Below are positions 51,148 to 63,957 of a stretch of DNA of 64,000 bases, one piece after another. The DNA lies in assembly GCA_964057225.1 (NCBI GenBank), contig OZ059900.1, positions 9,362,001-9,426,000 on the forward strand. The letters are read 5' to 3'. The position numbers were made by a program, and so were the translations under genes. The DNA comes from Auanema rhodensis (lineage: Eukaryota > Animalia > Nematoda). Positions within the stretch are counted from its first letter, which is position 1. Every line of letters begins with the position of its first letter. The notes under the pieces were generated by a model. That model was not told where the DNA came from. It was given only the letters and a program-made list of their open reading frames with translations, and did not search any database.

Positions 51148-52408
51148 GATCATCAAAGACATTCAGAAAAAAGAAAACGAATAAAAACTGATGAATACAA
51201 CTAGTTTTAGTTTTCTTCTGTGAACTAAACTACATTCTCAATTAACTCGAAAATCATTGTGGTTATTGCAAGTTCTACAAGTTATCCATCATACGCGCGG
51301 TATCGTCGTTATTGCTAAAGGAAAGGAGCGAAAAAAAAAAGAGTTTTTCTTTTATTTCACCTCGTTAATCATTAAAATTTTCTAAATTTCATCTTTAAAG
51401 TTGAAAAAAGCTCAAACTGTTGTTTCTTGGTTTTAATTCACATAAAATTCATTCTGCCAAATATTTGACGTTGTTATTATTCAATGATGAGTTTGGAAAA
51501 TTATTGTTTACTGCCACCGTTCTTGATAACTCTTTTGAACAAAAAATAAAATAAACTTTACTTGGTTTGTCCTAATTTGTCCTTCGGCATCTTATTTTTT
51601 GTTTTTCTTCCTTTAAAAAAATGTCTACATATACATCATTGTTTATCAATACATATGAACGTATACACACTTATCAGTTCAGTTTTTGTTGGCTTTGTGC
51701 CTATAGCGCATCATTTTTCGAATAATTGAATCTTTAAAAATCAGATTGTTGACTTAGCATTCTGACTGATATGTTGTACAGTTTATATCAATCATATGAA
51801 TGAGATCTATCTCTAGTCTTTTCGATCTCATCAGCCATTTCTTTAAATTTAAATATAGGCATAAATAAAATATTAACTGATAACATTTTGATCGTCTATG
51901 AATGAACTTTAGACTATCTTTTCAACTTTTCAATTCATTATAATCTCTGTATGCTTATACATAAAAGATAGGAAGCAAGCACTAAGGTTTTTTTGGGTTT
52001 ATCATATTAAACATCTAGCTTGGCTCCTTCGTCTGTTCATTCTTCCAATCTGAACTCTATTACTTAATCCAATCTGTTGACATCATCTAATCATGAGATT
52101 ATTACGCTATCATAGCCCAATTGCACATTGTGTACATGTTATGGATAAGCTAAATGAGTATTCAAATAAAAATACCAGGTGGGAGAAGTATTTATTGATA
52201 TGTGTGTTCTTAATAATAGTTTCCTATAACTAACTTGGTTCATAGTTAATAGAATATATAACTTATTCATGCTGTATAGGTATTAACAGTTGTATTTTCA
52301 TTTTTTTAACAAATAATTGTTTTTAAAACAACTAAAATTTTGTTTTCCGGTGCTTATAACTACAAAATATGTAGATTTTTCATTCTAATATTCACGTATT
52401 ATAGAAAA

Positions 52409-54568
52409 ATGACTGAACGACGTATGCCAAGTTTACGTATACTTTGTACCGCCCTTATCGTCTCGTTGGGAGGCTCATTTCATTTCGGATATCAATTAGC
52501 TATAACCAATCCAGCTCAGAGTGCTTTTATCCATTTTTTAAATACAACCTGGGGAAATCATATAAACATGTCTCCGAGTACAATGAGTGTAAGTACTAGA
52601 TGTAATATTATTATGAGCTAATAAATTATAGAATGTTTGGAGTTTTACTGTAGCGATATTATTTCTTGGAGCTGTTTGCGGATCATTTTCTATGAGCTTT
52701 GTGGCTGACTATGTTGGCAGAAAGCGTGGCTTATATATATCTATTGGTTTAGGAATAATATCTGCTGCCCTATCCATTATATCAAAATTTGTAAGTTTCT
52801 ACTTCTATCCTTGTTTCTCAAGAAAAAAACTTTTTTAATCTAGATTCCTTCGTTTATTGCTTATATTATTTCTCGTATTACAATGGGATATTCAGTAAGC
52901 TTAAGTCTTGGCTTAGCAGCAGTTTTCTTATCAGAAGTTAGGTATGATGAACAATTCTTAACTAGCAATATTTGTTTTTACTACAGCCCACGTGAGTGTC
53001 GCGGATTAGTTGGCATGATTACGGGATGCGCTGTTCAGCTTGGAACAGTAGTTGGTTCTATCTTAGCTATGCCACAGATTTTTGGTAGCGATAGTTCATG
53101 GTATAAGATGAAATCATTAGCTAATTTATAAAATACATTTAATTAGGTATCTGATATATGTTGCTGAAGGAGCTATTATGTTGTTTTTTATTTGTACGTT
53201 ACCTTATTTACCAGAGTCTCCAGGGTAAGATATATAAATAAGTTTAGCACATGTTCAAACAATGAATTTAGACATTTGCTTAAAGTTGGTGCTGTAACTG
53301 CAGCACGAAACTCAATCCAGTATTATCATGAATGCGATGAAACAACAGCGGATAGTTTATTATCGCAAGTTAAGGTACATCATTGTATTGTTTTATCAAC
53401 AATTTTGTTGAATTTCACATTAGGAAGAGCAAAAAGAAGCGAAAAAGAATTATCGAATTTTGGAAGTAATGGGAAATAGACAACTCCGTAATAAAGTGCT
53501 AATTGGTATTGTGATCGCCTTTGCTATGTCCTTCAGTGGAATTGCTGGTGAGCCGATTAAAATGCTTTTCTTTGTGTAAAAAATAAAAAACTTTCAGTTA
53601 TAAATGCATATGCTGTTCAAATCCTTCTAGACACTGGCTTATCACGTACTGCTGCATCTCTTGCGAATGTCGGTATTGCTTTTGCTAGCTTGGTACGATT
53701 TATCATCACTTTCATATACATTCAAGATATTTTCATTACTTTTCTTTGAAATTGTGTTGTACTTATAAAAATATTTTTTATCAGCAGCTAATTATGATGT
53801 TATAGGTTGCAAGTGCAATATCTTCATTAGGTGTTGATCGGTTCGGTCGCCGCCCACTACTCCTTGTATCGCTTACGGGTCTTCTCATCTGCAATTTCTT
53901 CATTTTTGCACTAATGCTCGCATTTGATATGACATCTGTAAGTATTAATCTGAGAACAGAATGAGGCATTATATCGAAATATGCTCTAAAAAAATAGATT
54001 TTTGAACTTTGACATGGATCAAAATACTTCAAAATGAGATTAATTAATCAACGATAATTACATATATTTACCTTTCAGATACAAGCTCTTGGATTCTGTC
54101 TCATATTTGTTATTTGTATTTTTGTTGTATTTTTCTCTGTTGGACCTGGTCCCTTGTGCTATTTCATTGCAGCTGAGCTTGTTGGACATACAGCTCGCAG
54201 TGCTGCTCAAGGATGGGCCAGTATTGTGCAGATGTTCAGGTATTGACATTCGTGAGTTAAACACATTAAAATCTATAATTTCAGTCGTTTCATATTAGTC
54301 ATGTCATTTCTTCCATTAAAAACAGCTATACACTCATATGCTTATCTTTTATTGTTTATTGCTCCTGTTTTTCTATCAATTGTTTTCTTATACTATCGTT
54401 TACCTGAAACAAAAAATAGAACACCAGATCAGGTACAAACTATACCATAACAACAAATACTTCAAATGAAATGTTTAGGTAAATGAAGAAATGAGTCGAT
54501 TACCTCAGTTATGTGGAAGTCGACCAGTCCATGATGCTCATTCAAATGAATCAATCAACACTGTATAG
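52409..54568 (+). CDS. MFS sugar-porter (GLUT/SLC2-like) transporter
   Basis: Spliced motifs GGSFHFGY, ADYVGRK, FLSEVSPRECRG, LPESPG, VDRFGRRPL, SVGPGPLCYFIAAELV and RLPETKNRT. Confidence 0.93.
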
Positions 54569-55047: not shown

Positions 55048-56936
55048 AGGTCATTGTTAAAAATAGGGTATGAATCAGATATGAGACAGATGACTGTTAG
55101 GTATATTGTAAATAATACAAATAAGTAACAGTTGTATTCTACTTTGATCTATTTATTGTAACTTGCGCGCCAATCTATATTCGAATTATTTATATAAATT
55201 TATATCTTTTGTACGTAAATGTTTTTTTTTTTGTGAACAGTTTTATTAGTCTATCAATTCATTGACTTTTTCATTACAATCAAAGGTGGCATTATCTGAC
55301 ATACTATAACAATAAAACCTTGAAAACCTGTTTTTTCTTAGTCGTCTCTAGAATATCATGTCTAGAACGTTATTGAGAATGTACATGTCCATTGACCTGT
55401 TGGGTTTTCATTTTAGTTTTACAATTTTTTTTCATATCGGCATGATTCACATGCTTTTAATTCATATTTTTTTCCAGAAAATTATGTTATTACATACACG
55501 ATTGCATTTTGCGTATGTTTCTCTGTCTCTATGTGTTTTTTTTTCGTAGTTTTCTAATTTCTATCTAATTCATCTGTTTTGTGTAAATGGCAACAGTTAA
55601 ATGCAATGTCTCAGATCTCTTCATTTTGAATCTTCTACCTCATTTCATAGCTCGTCGTCGCTTTTCTTTTAAGTGATTTGTCATCTGCTAGCCAAAAGTC
55701 TCAATGTCTTTTTCTAATCCGTGGACGACATTTTGATACATTTCAAGTGACTTCATTCTTCTATTTCACTTTCTTTCATCTTTGAATTTGACCTGCACAA
55801 TGAATAAAACAATGACTTGAACTAAGTATTACTTCACCGAATATTGATTTCAAGATATCTTTGTTTATACATCTTAGAACAAAGGGAAATCCAGCTGTTC
55901 TATCTCAAAGCGGCTAGTATACACTTATGTTCGGTGTTCTTTTCTTACTTGGATTAGACTTTTTTGAATATTTATTTGTATTCTCATATTTCATGACCTT
56001 TACTTTTTTATATTTACCCACAAGCATAACACCTGCGCTTACCAATAGCTCTTAATTCTGTTCACAATGAGCAGATACTAACCTTCAGGTCATGTTGGTC
56101 TATTAACGACGATCTCTAGGCTTTATGTTCTTCCATTATTCTCATTTACTCAAGTTTTTTCTCATCAAATTTGTGTATTTAAATTAGATTTTTTATTTTT
56201 TATATTCGAAACAGCTGCATAACAGCCTTATTCTGATTCATAAATTGCATGTGCTTTAACATGTGAACGATCAGATGAAACGAGAAGCAATTCTCGTATG
56301 GTCATTATGCTTTCGAGAATTTTAATGCGTCATCTGTGACCTATATCCTGATTCATGTATGACCTGTACACTATTTAACATCTGTCGAGCACTTATTATT
56401 CATTTGAACGAGCTGATCAAGCACTATTTTCCAACATTTTTTATTTGCAAGCTTATATTTTCTAAATTTTAATGCTCAAATACAGTTTTAATAATGTAAA
56501 ATTATATATTTAAATAGTTTTTCAAAGCAGTTCCTTTAATATTTTTTGTTTTTTATTTTTCTACGCTTCATTTCGGTTTCATAACATTTTTCTAATAATT
56601 TGTGTATATTCTTATTATTTCAATCAATTTGATGTATTTAGTTATGAACATGGTAATGTCTTTTCTGTTTTTGGTTCAGACAGTATAATGAGCTATAGAT
56701 CTAGTTGACCTAGATAATATAAGAACAATAGGCGTCCTTGTGCTGACAACCCATTGTTCACAGAAATTTTGGCATAATGTTACATGCTGCTTGAGTACTC
56801 ATACCTACTTCAGCTTGTCTAGAATAATATCTTTTGCTGTTCTTTGTTTTTCTTCTCCTTTTTTAATTTTTTTATTCATCTTTCGGGAATTTCAAAGCGA
56901 TAGCTCCGATGGAGGACGCAATTAAATGCGTGACCT
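55048..56936. promoter_or_regulatory. Cluster of nine AGGTCA/TGACCT nuclear-receptor half-sites upstream of the Pil1-like gene
   Basis: Sites start at 55048, 55393, 55789, 55994, 56087, 56337, 56360, 56706 and 56931. The 56706 site reads TATCT-AGGTCA on the minus strand, a ROR-type extended site. Confidence 0.6.
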
Positions 56937-57701: not shown

Positions 57702-58922
57702 ATGCTCATTTCAACCACAAAAGGTAAGATAATTCAATGTTATGTACACTATATAAACATGTGTATTAAAGATGCATCAAAGTCAATTTTGGACTCTAAG
57801 CCTAGTCAGAGACGACGATCCAAGGGATTATTTCAATCATCATCGCTGGAGGAGGCACTAGTGGGATTTGAAGCAGCAGGGTTTGTTTATAATAAAGCAT
57901 TTTGAACAATTTGATGCGTTTTAAGAAAAATGACAAAAAAATTAGCTGAAGTTCAAGAGAAAAGCGTGGAAAAGTTATCAGATTGGGCAAGTGATGGCAT
58001 AAATACAGCAATAGGTATAATACTCATAGCTTCATTTTAATAATCTTTAAAAATTTATTCAGATGATGTAACAGGTCGTATGAAAGATTTAATGTTAATG
58101 TATACAAAGCAACAAAAAACGTTAGCTGATCATATGATGAGAAATGCTTCGGTATGTCGTAGATGTTTACATAACGGTTTAAAAATAATTTATTTCAGAA
58201 TATGAGAATATTAATAGAATTAGAAGAAAAGGTTAAAGAAAATGAGAAAGAGGTGGAAAAATTGCGAACAAGAGAGAAAAAATTAGAAAAAGAAATGAAA
58301 AGAAATGAGAATCCTGGCTTTTTGAGAAAGAAAGCTGATTCTGACACCTTGCGCAGTGATTTGAGAGAAGTAAGATAAAACTTGGAATATTTTCATTAAT
58401 GTGTTTATTATGATTACAGTTTTTGGAAACAGCTAAAGAGAAAGAAAAAGCAGAATATGATCTTCTAACAATGAGGAAAGAAATGGAAGTCGCAAAAATG
58501 TTCCAATTCCGTAAAGAAATGAAGGTATATCTGAGAAGAAATTTTAATTCATAATCTTTTAATATAGGGTTTATTCCAATCTTATAATGAGTTTTTTGAT
58601 GCAGCAAGTAGTATTTTCAAATGCCAACAGTGAGTAATAAGTCGTTTTGTGTTGAAAATTGAATAATATTTCAGTGAACTAGTTGAGCTAGTGCCGGCAA
58701 TAAGTACGCAAGATGTTTCAAAAGTGAAATATGAAGGTGGCCAAATCGCCACAGAGAAAGTGAACCAAGTTCGCAGGTATTTAAATGCAATCATTAAAGC
58801 TTGAAAAAAAATTTGATACAATAGAAAAACCTTTTTCTTATTTTTACAGATCTTTGGGAGATTCTCCACCACGTACAAAAATTAATAGCAGACGTAGAAG
58901 TGCTCCGTTTAAAATAATATGA
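57702..58922 (+). CDS. 273-aa all-helical BAR-like protein resembling eisosome core Pil1/Lsp1
   Basis: Nine phase-consistent exons: 57702-57723, 57772-57880, 57926-58014, 58063-58151, 58199-58369, 58420-58524, 58568-58629, 58675-58776, 58850-58922. The gene model is solid; the family call rests on a by-eye alignment (see findings). Confidence 0.75.
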
Positions 58923-59254
58923 TTAATTCACTGATTATTAAGTATTAAATGTTTATATTGTAATTAAAAATGTATATACCTTGTCCTTCATTGAATGTAA
59001 TGCAGTACTATTACGGGTACGTATTATAATGAATAAAGCTTTGAAATAAGTATTGCTTGAATTTCATAGTAAACATGTTGAAAAATATAATTTTTTTTTG
59101 CTCGAACCTAATCAGTAGGTAAAATATGAAAAACACTTATACTATGTTTTGTGCAAAATTTAAAAATGTTTCACGTCTGATTTACAGAGAGAATATTGTA
59201 AGAATAATAAAGATAGGGTTACTGTAGTTTTTCAAAAATTAATTAAATGAATTG

Positions 59255-59434: not shown

Positions 59435-60498
59435 ATGGATAAGCAATACAATCATTCACAACAAAGTAATACAAGTATTTTGTTACCAGCTAAACGCTTG
59501 GCTCTTGATGTTTACAAACGTGAAAAGGAATCGGAGGATGTTCGAAATAGGGTGGAAGACTTTGTGGCTAAGCACTTTTGGGCGAAAAAAGAGTTTTTGT
59601 TCTACATGAAAGAAGTCAATCACTTAGAAATTTGCGATCATTCTGAGAAAGTCGAACCACCCTCCTCTGCAAATGATTTTGAAGATGAATTGATTAAAAT
59701 GGATGCTCTATGTGGAGATCTCCTAGATTCTATGGACGCAATACATAATTGCTTGACCGCGAGAACACCCGATGTGCAAAGAGTTGGCCCAATTTTAAAA
59801 CGGGTCGTTTTTAATGAAAGTGAGAAGGTTCTCTCTTGTAACAAGCGGAATAATATGATATTTAGCCGTTGTAATGAAAAAGTTAGTATGCTCCACAAGT
59901 AAATATTAAGTAAAATTATTATTTCAGAGGTATATTGAGCATCCTTCAAGCAGAATCACGAACAACCAAGTTATGGATTTGATTCAACATATCGTAAGCT
60001 TTTCCTGTTATATTAGTAACTTATATTTTATTAATCAGGTATCGTTTGGAAGTTCGGTTATGCCAGACACTCCTATGTCCTTTATACAGTTGTTGGTAAA
60101 CTTTTACTTAAATATATCTTTCGAATACTTTATTTTCAGTCTTTTTTAAATATTCAAAATAAGTTATCCATTAAGAATGTTAGTAACACTTCTTTCTCTA
60201 AAATAAGAAACTTGGTAAGTTTTATTATTTTCTTAATGTGCTACTAAGACATTTTCAGATAAATAAAAAGTTGATGTGGAATCCGAACTCCAATAAAGTT
60301 ACCAAATATCCTTATATACAGAAAGAAACTTCAGCTTATTCAGCTGAAGAATTGAAATATATTGTTTCTATCGTAAGTACTTGTTTTTTTTCTTTGTCTC
60401 CGAGAACATATTCGAGTTTTCAGTTGGAAAAGGACATAGTAAAAATGGTGAGTCAAACAGCTGGCGTTCAACCATCTCTTCCAGCCAATGGTAATTAG
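59435..60498 (+). CDS. Unknown tandem family protein, copy 1 (6 exons)
   Basis: A long exon 1 (FWAKKEFLFY...VEPPSS...MDALCGDLLDSMD...IFSRCNEK) is followed by five short exons whose intron positions are shared with copies 2 and 3. Confidence 0.85.
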
Positions 60499-61140: not shown

Positions 61141-62262
61141 ATGGATGAGAGAGACCATTTTTCGAATCAATGCGTTCAAAGCATCAAGCTTGCGCTGAAG
61201 AATTTGACTGATGACCAATATACGCTTGCATGTAAATCCGACGAAGTTCGTAACATTACTGACGAGTTTGTGTCTAAAGAATCTTGGGCAAAACGAGAAG
61301 TATCGTTTTATATGGACGAAATCAATCATACTGCACTTTGCGATGATACTGAGAGAGTCGAACCACCCTGCTCTTCAAACGACTATCAGGATGAATTGGT
61401 TAAAATGGATGCCGTGTGTGGAGATATTCTTGACTCAATGGATGCAATATATAATTGCTTAACCGCGAGAACAGCTCACGAGCAAAGAGTTGGCCCAATT
61501 TTAAAACGCGTCGTTTCTGATGAAAGTAAGAAGATTCTCTCCTGTAACAAGCGGAATAATATGATATTTAGCCGTTGTAATGAGAAAGTGAGTATGCTCC
61601 ACAAGTAAATATTAAGTAAAATTATTATTTCAGAGGTATATTGAGGATCCTTCAAGCAGAATCACGAACAATCAAGTTATGGATATAATTGAACATGTGG
61701 TTAGCTTTGCCTTACAATTTTCCAAAATATTGTTTATTTCTTAGATTGCGTTTGGAAGTTCCTTTCTGCCTGGTGCACCTATGACCTATGCCGAATTTAT
61801 AGTTAATATAACTTTACCAAAGTTGCATAATTGTTATGTTTAGGCTTTTTTGAATGTTACCAATAGGATTTTCATAAAGAACGTTAGTCCTGCTTCTTTT
61901 TCCAGTGTCCGGACCTTTGTAAGATATTTTCCAATTGTAACCAGCTATATAATTACTTGATCAGATGAACGAAAAGATTATTTGGCATACTAAGTTCGAT
62001 CCACTCACCCGGAATCCATATTTTCGTACCAATCATTTAACTTTTACAGTGCTCGAATTGGAATATATAGTTTCTATCGTGAGTATACTCTTTATTTCCG
62101 GAAATATTTTTGAATATTCAGTTGGACAAGGACAGAGCTAAGTCGATGACTCACCACGTACAACTGCCTCTTCCAGCTGTTCTCAACACTGATTGTTCCG
62201 TGGATGAATTAGAAGAAACAATCAGTGATTCTGAAGATTATGAAGTGGATGTAGTATCTTAA
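61141..62262 (+). CDS. Unknown tandem family protein, copy 2 (6 exons, acidic C-terminal tail)
   Basis: Paralog of copy 1 with the same exon structure; ends ...SVDELEETISDSEDYEVDVVS*. Confidence 0.85.
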
Positions 62263-62911: not shown

Positions 62912-63021
62912 ATCATGCATCATTTATTTGAATGATTGCACTTTTTTTGCACTTCGTTTCGAATATTAAAATTATTTTAATATTTGATTTTATCATCCTT
63001 AACTTAAGTAGAACTTTGAAG

Positions 63022-63957
63022 ATGGAAGAGAAAAATTATAATTTGCATCCACGTGTTAGATTTCTTGGAAAAGAACTCAAACGCATGAGGGATGATCTTG
63101 ATTGCCGTAACTTCGAATTGAACTGGATTAATGACAAGAATGAGCACTTTGATGCTAACTTATTCTGGGCAAAGCAGGAGTTTCTGTTTTACGCCAAAGA
63201 ATATAATCACGAAGACTTTTGCGAACATACTGAGAGAATCGAACCACCAAGCTCTTCAAATGGTTATGACGATAAATTGGTTAAACTGGATGCTCTGTGT
63301 GGAGACATTCTTGACTCACTGGATTCTCTTTATGATTCCTTGAGCGCGAGAATACTTGATATAGAAAGACTTGGCCCAGTTTTGAAATATGTTGCTAACG
63401 AACAGAAGGATAAGATTCTCACTTGCAATCATCTCAATGATTTGATCTTTAGTCGCTGTAACGAGAAAGTGAGAACTTTTTCTTGTTCATTATCCTGTTG
63501 TAATGGTTTTCAGAAGTATCTTGAGGATTCAACGAGCAAAGTCACTAGAAGCCAAGTTATAGATCTGATTCAACATGTGGTGAACATTAGTTGTTATCGC
63601 TCTGGAATTATACTTCAGTTGCAGATTGCTTTCGGAAGTACGGTGTTTCCAGATACTCCTATGAGCGCACTTAAATTGGGGGTAAAATGGCGTGAACAAT
63701 GCTTTGAAAAAAATGCTTTCAGATTTGTTTACGGGATAGAAATGTACTTCCAATGAAAAATGTCAGTGCAGATGCATTCTATTATGTTAGAAACTTTGTG
63801 AGCTACTCCATTATTTTTATTTTTTTAATATTTGTTTTATCAGATCAACAAAAAGCTTACGTCTAATCCTGTTAAAATTCAAAAAATTGCTAATCCTTTT
63901 GCGTTTATAGGAAATTTATCTTATACAATTGATGAAATGAAACATATAGCCGACATC
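63022..63957 (+). CDS. Unknown tandem family protein, copy 3 (3' end beyond the window)
   Basis: MEEKNYNLHPRV...FWAKQEFLFYAKE...IEPPSS...LDALCGDILDSLD...IFSRCNEK | KYLEDSTS...DLIQHV | IAFGSTVFPDTPMS... | ... | INKKL...YTIDEMKHIADI |. Intron positions match copies 1 and 2. Confidence 0.85.

Follow-up and report, generated by a model that had tools for sequence, protein, structure and literature searches.

A predicted helical nematode protein from a spliced, expressed gene resembles fungal eisosome Pil1 marginally in its N-terminal half

We asked whether a gene in a 64,000-nt stretch of the Auanema rhodensis genome (the window) encodes an animal relative of the fungal eisosome proteins Pil1 and Lsp1, as a first-pass annotation had proposed. 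Lsp1 (3PLT) and Pil1 (8QB7) share a crescent-shaped BAR dimer fold, self-assemble into lattices on PI(4,5)P2 membranes and localise to furrows of the plasma membrane. The annotation linked the gene to meisosomes, the eisosome-like folded apical membranes of nematode epidermis, and knew of no membrane-shaping meisosome subunit; we found in the literature no such subunit of nematode meisosomes, no nematode Pil1, and no report linking Pil1 to FAM92. A paper on meisosomes states that direct orthologues of Pil1 or Lsp1 are absent from animals (PMC10010689). Were the gene to encode a Pil1-type scaffold, the family would extend to Metazoa with its first animal member, and the folded apical membranes of the nematode epidermis would gain a concrete candidate coat; should that reading fail, the gene would be one for an ordinary lineage-specific helical protein.

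Splicing of the window sequence at canonical sites gave a CDS at 57702-58922 (+) with nine exons and a 273-aa product. All eight introns are GT..AG and 43-73 nt long. The exons, the span covered by transcripts, and an AATAAA read from the window sequence are as follows:

57702..57723 (+), exon 1: ATG, residues 1-7 plus 1 nt
57772..57880 (+), exon 2: N-terminal tail, basic, containing RRRS; helix 1 begins
57926..58014 (+), exon 3: helix 1 ends; KLSDWA, aligned to Pil1 QLSxWG
58063..58151 (+), exon 4: the long helix 2 begins (hydrophobic part)
58199..58369 (+), exon 5: helix 2 ends, rich in K/E; N-P-G turn; helix 3 begins
58420..58524 (+), exon 6: charged part of helix 3
58568..58629 (+), exon 7: aromatic-rich part of helix 3
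58675..58776 (+), exon 8: helix 3 ends; P/G loop; helix 4, short
58850..58922 (+), exon 9: C-terminal tail, basic, containing the second RRRS; stop codon
57641..59034 (+), transcript-covered span: spliced contigs, mRNA ~0.95-1.0 kb
59032-59037: AATAAA

Transcript contigs of 940-994 nt from four public runs (one study) contain all eight joints, and they show zero base differences from the window within exons; in three of the four, a single base differs in the first piece of the alignment. As the contigs skip exactly its eight introns, the gene is native, expressed and spliced. Splicing and transcripts together bore out the coordinates, the exon-intron structure and the 273-aa length that had been read from the sequence, and the presence of spliced contigs in four runs confirmed the annotation's view that the gene is native and not contamination. 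When exons 3, 5 and 6 were used as paralog queries against the genome (181 Mb, 112 contigs), each matched this locus only; because they match no other locus, the gene is single copy.

The protein is basic (pI 9.4) and, as read from the positions of Pro and Gly and from composition, is probably almost wholly alpha-helical. Its predicted parts are:

residues 1-29: N-terminal basic tail, charge +5
57810-57821 (+), residues 21-24: RRRS site 1
residues 30-66: helix 1, ~37 residues
residues ~73-139: helix 2, long
58310-58318 (+), residues 141-143: N-P-G turn (ENPGF)
residues ~147-222: helix 3, long
after helix 3: P/G loop, then a short last helix (helix 4)
C-terminal end: basic tail, charge +5
58890-58901 (+), residues 264-267: RRRS site 2

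Hydrophobic residues are enriched in helix 1, early in helix 2 and toward the end of helix 3, whose final 37 residues hold seven aromatics. The segments on either side of the N-P-G turn are 70% and 51% charged. An AlphaFold2 model of exon 5 alone placed a helix at 2-37, a break at 38-40 (the N-P-G) and a second helix at 41-56 (pLDDT 80). The layout suggests an antiparallel helical hairpin, hydrophobic at its base and charged at its tip, with a shorter helix in front. It would suit a BAR monomer without being specific to BAR.

For the comparison with Pil1, we used LEQELVRAEA, back-translated to 29 nt, as a pattern to search contigs from metagenomes; this gave at least 120 loci, from which we took 34 full-length fungal Pil1 proteins for a local profile, and a second local profile was built from 154 proteins. 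Pfam assigned three of the 34 to Pil1 (317-430 bits). A protein-database search with 12 of these proteins returned 3021 matches at E <= 1, and the best 120 of the 3021 all belong to PF13805, every named one among them being fungal. The metagenome pattern QLSxWG...DVSD..DKL gave zero matches. Many of the metagenome loci lie on contigs of 1.1-2 kb that resemble metatranscripts, and their proteins have two types of N-terminus, MHRTYSMRQSRAPTAS... and MNRSLSIRSKK....

The annotation had set three fragments of Pil1 against the nematode protein. The quoted strings proved exact (Pil1 84-104, 194-227 and 240-258 in 8qb7_A), its count of 8/34 identities in the second block is correct, and each fragment had been put at its best ungapped placement in the 273-aa protein. 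As evidence against chance the three pairwise blocks failed: the best placement in shuffled sequences equals or beats them in 69%, 13% and 29% of shuffles. Against a Pil1 family profile the claimed likeness survives in part, marginally, for the region of block 1 (residues 24-138), where it reaches further toward the N-terminus than the stretch originally quoted, and it does not survive for blocks 2 and 3, which lie in a C-terminal half that scores below the shuffle mean.

No match to Pil1 is significant by standard criteria. The annotation had named a search against Pfam Pil1 as a check, and PF13805 gave no match at E <= 10 on the exons searched one by one, a test of low power. Zero loci were found in six-frame searches of the 181-Mb genome, either with PF13805 or with a 12-row Pil1 alignment. 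With the whole protein, hmmsearch against the HMM of 34 proteins scored 4.1 bits (reached by 19/2000 shuffles), and hhalign against the same profile scored 25.7 (probability 4.8%; reached by 1/400 shuffles). Against the profile of 154 proteins the hhalign score was 27.4 (probability 6.7%) and the HMMER score 3.3 bits.

The two halves of the protein were compared with Pil1 separately. The C-terminal half (residues 137-273) scored 10.7 in hhalign against the Pil1 profile vs 11.4 +/- 2.1 in shuffles (120/200 shuffles score as high or higher), and 11.8 by PSSM vs 13.6 +/- 2.0. In hmmalign to Pil1, residues 137-273 stay unaligned, and of the motifs that Pil1 conserves in its centre and C-terminal part (SVQPSRDRK, LKYK.P.S.K, LEQELVRAEA and AEAQL.N.TR.K.K) the first three are not kept. 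The N-terminal half scored 24.35 in hhalign (E = 1.1e-3, probability 20%, 67 aligned columns), a score reached by 0/300 shuffles (mean 11.1, sd 2.1) and by 0/408 real or spurious-ORF decoys from fetched loci and the window (maximum 18.5). The stretch concerned is:

57819..58303 (+, introns included), residues 24-138: Pil1-like stretch, against Pil1 HMM positions 40-141

By local PSSM this stretch scored 31.2 bits, and a null that keeps hydrophobic, polar and Pro/Gly positions gave 17.3 +/- 2.7, with 0/600 reaching 31.2. Extreme-value fits to the nulls gave p ~2e-4 to 1e-3 for a single directed test. The paired motifs (query/Pil1) are SKGL/SKKL, FEAAGK/YE.AGR and KLSDWA/QLSxWG, with a 7-residue insertion in the 273-aa protein between the second and the third; beyond KLSDWA the alignment continues, less closely, through R..LK.IR and R.RK.KI of Pil1. 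Identical residues occupy 11/26 of the invariant Pil1 columns in the aligned stretch, and DKLGV from the N-terminal motif set of Pil1 (DVSD..DKLGVL) is absent. In yeast Pil1, R126, K130 and R133 form the basic lipid-binding patch of the concave face; aligned with them here are R106, E110 and K116, with a basic residue at two of the three positions and a reversed charge at the other. Residues 24-138 appear to be the sole part of the protein with a colinear Pil1 likeness that is, marginally, nonrandom. A p of ~1e-3 is suggestive for one directed comparison and would fail correction over ~25,000 families, and we lowered the weight of the likeness further because the gene had been chosen for that very likeness.

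Other BAR families were searched in the same way. In a six-frame search of the genome, PF03114 found loci on contigs C6, C3 and C4 (best 55.7 bits). These canonical BAR genes, which served as a positive control, are at G000:C6:15712479-15713734 (-), G000:C3:7612204-7613191 (+) and G000:C4:14694294-14694419 (+), and because PF03114 finds them exon by exon, the six-frame search is able to see canonical BAR genes. It gave no match to PF03114 at C8:9419702-9420922, the locus of the 273-aa gene, which is not a canonical BAR gene. PF06730 (FAM92) had no match on the exons, in the genome or in the controls, a search that lacked a positive control. No Pfam family of the BAR clan matched any single exon; the Pfam matches of the exons were chance coiled-coil matches only, on exon 5 (DivIC, Seryl_tRNA_N and Spc24).

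Searches for homologs used mainly exon 5. Compared with 1.84 billion representatives, it matched two, a 673-aa repetitive protein and a Frizzled-CRD repeat protein, both of which we judged spurious. A protein-atlas search with exon 5 gave a best value of at most 0.81, and a sequence search of the PDB only the Nup62 coiled coil (E = 0.56). Exon 5 and the downstream neighbour retrieved no ortholog from collections that may omit this genome or very near ones. An exon-scaffold MAFFT alignment was dropped: its exons stack, and simulated orthologs at 40-50% identity gave 7-16 bits.

Upstream of the gene, nine AGGTCA half-sites (both strands) lie at 55048-56936, in 1.9 kb of intergenic sequence 0.7-2.6 kb before the transcript start, where the shuffle mean of the whole window predicts ~0.6. 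The whole window has 34 such sites vs 19.4 +/- 4.7 in shuffles. Their flanks vary, some being A/T-rich like ROR-type sites. The cluster would be compatible with control by nuclear receptors and shows neither epidermal nor molting-cycle expression. Further upstream, exon-sized ORFs at 52340-53479 (+) resemble, on inspection by eye, a sugar (MFS) transporter. Downstream are three tandem paralogous ORFs at 59435-59902, 61141-61608 and 62932-63756 (+), of 155, 155 and 274 aa, with the stretches CGD(I/L)LDS(M/L)D and FSRCNEKV in common; the first (59435-59902) matched no record exactly and had no homolog among a collection of 5.8 billion proteins, which may omit near genomes.

What kind of protein this is can be given a graded answer. 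We tentatively favour, with slightly less than even confidence, a BAR-type dimerising helical-bundle scaffold without an assigned family. Judging from the layout and from established BAR proteins, the base of the hairpin would form the dimer core together with helix 1; basic residues, along with the basic tail at each end, would bind acidic membrane lipid, and the RRRS sites might allow switching by basophilic kinases. This assignment draws on helix lengths and on the distribution of residues, and other helical hairpins may fit these equally well. It is quite conceivable, though we rather doubt it, that the protein is a generic coiled coil or helical hairpin with no BAR fold, from a nematode lineage that evolves fast, perhaps a cytoskeletal, kinetochore or trafficking adaptor, and that it resembles Pil1 by chance, as helical K/E-rich sequences may. 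Such a protein would account for exons that match only chance coiled-coil models in Pfam, for an exhaustive search with exon 5 that ended in two spurious proteins, and for a C-terminal half with no Pil1 signal; at p ~1e-3, moreover, ~20 of 20,000 genes would do as well by chance, and this one was preselected. It would account less readily for an N-terminal signal that holds against pattern-preserving shuffles and real-ORF decoys, with matches that land on invariant Pil1 columns, and the aromatics of helix 3 (7/37) and the charged-tip hairpin depart from what a plain parallel coiled coil usually shows.

Two further readings place the protein in a recognised BAR family. Descent from another BAR family (CIBAR/FAM92, BIN3/Rvs161-like or arfaptin-like), with the Pil1 likeness reflecting the shared BAR superfamily, is quite improbable. 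The layout suits BAR domains in general, helix 3, with its aromatic-rich end, may resemble helix 3 of classical BAR domains, and the N-P-G turn may resemble the N-P tip loop of CIBAR; against this, PF03114 finds three other loci and not this gene, and PF06730 is without a match, but it is silent everywhere, controls included. A true animal member of the Pil1/Lsp1 BAR family that has diverged strongly, and that might scaffold the folded apical membrane of the epidermis, is unlikely as well. It would explain the colinearity of residues 24-138 with HMM positions 40-141 (SKKL, YE.AGR, QLSxWG, R..LK.IR), the helix lengths and loop positions that parallel Pil1, and the three best fragment placements, which are colinear with Pil1, and it has a precedent in Ssp1, whose Pil1-type BAR domain was seen by structure alone (PMC12470953). 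It has against it the silence of PF13805 on the exons and genome-wide, HMMER scores of 3-4 bits and hhalign probabilities of 5-20%, a C-terminal half without likeness, and the loss of the strongest motifs (DKLGV, SVQPSRDRK, LKYK.P.S.K, LEQELVRAEA). Animals, in addition, are described as lacking direct orthologues of Pil1 and Lsp1 (PMC10010689), and the named proteins among the best 120 Pil1-profile matches are all fungal. That the 273-aa protein serves as a meisosome scaffold, the role first proposed for it, we regard as very improbable indeed.

Among known systems, CIBAR/FAM92 proteins (PF06730) are comparable in size, consist of a BAR domain standing alone and carry N-P in the loop at the tip; the 273-aa protein has no match to PF06730 on its exons, nor has the genome, in a search without a positive control. 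The three-helix layout, hydrophobic core and charged distal tip of the classical BAR and N-BAR proteins (PF03114: amphiphysin, endophilin, BIN3/Rvs161) are compatible with what we predict for the 273-aa protein, but PF03114 detects three other genes in this genome and misses this one. Ssp1 of S. cerevisiae has a Pil1-type BAR domain that was recognised only via an AlphaFold model, and mutant tests exist (PMC12470953). Like Ssp1, the nematode protein is helical (by prediction) and has no usable primary-sequence homology to Pil1; Ssp1, however, has a fold match and mutant tests to its credit. From Pil1 and Lsp1 themselves (PF13805; 3PLT, 8QB7) it differs in the 7-residue insertion between the two N-terminal motifs, in a C-terminal half unrelated by sequence, in a basic C-terminal tail where the fungal proteins have an acidic one, and in being animal, not fungal. 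With them it has in common a similar size, an N-terminal tail that is basic and phosphorylatable, predicted helices and loops that follow one another in the same order at similar lengths, and, in the first half of the domain, a marginal colinear likeness (FEAAGK vs YE.AGR, KLSDWA vs QLSxWG).
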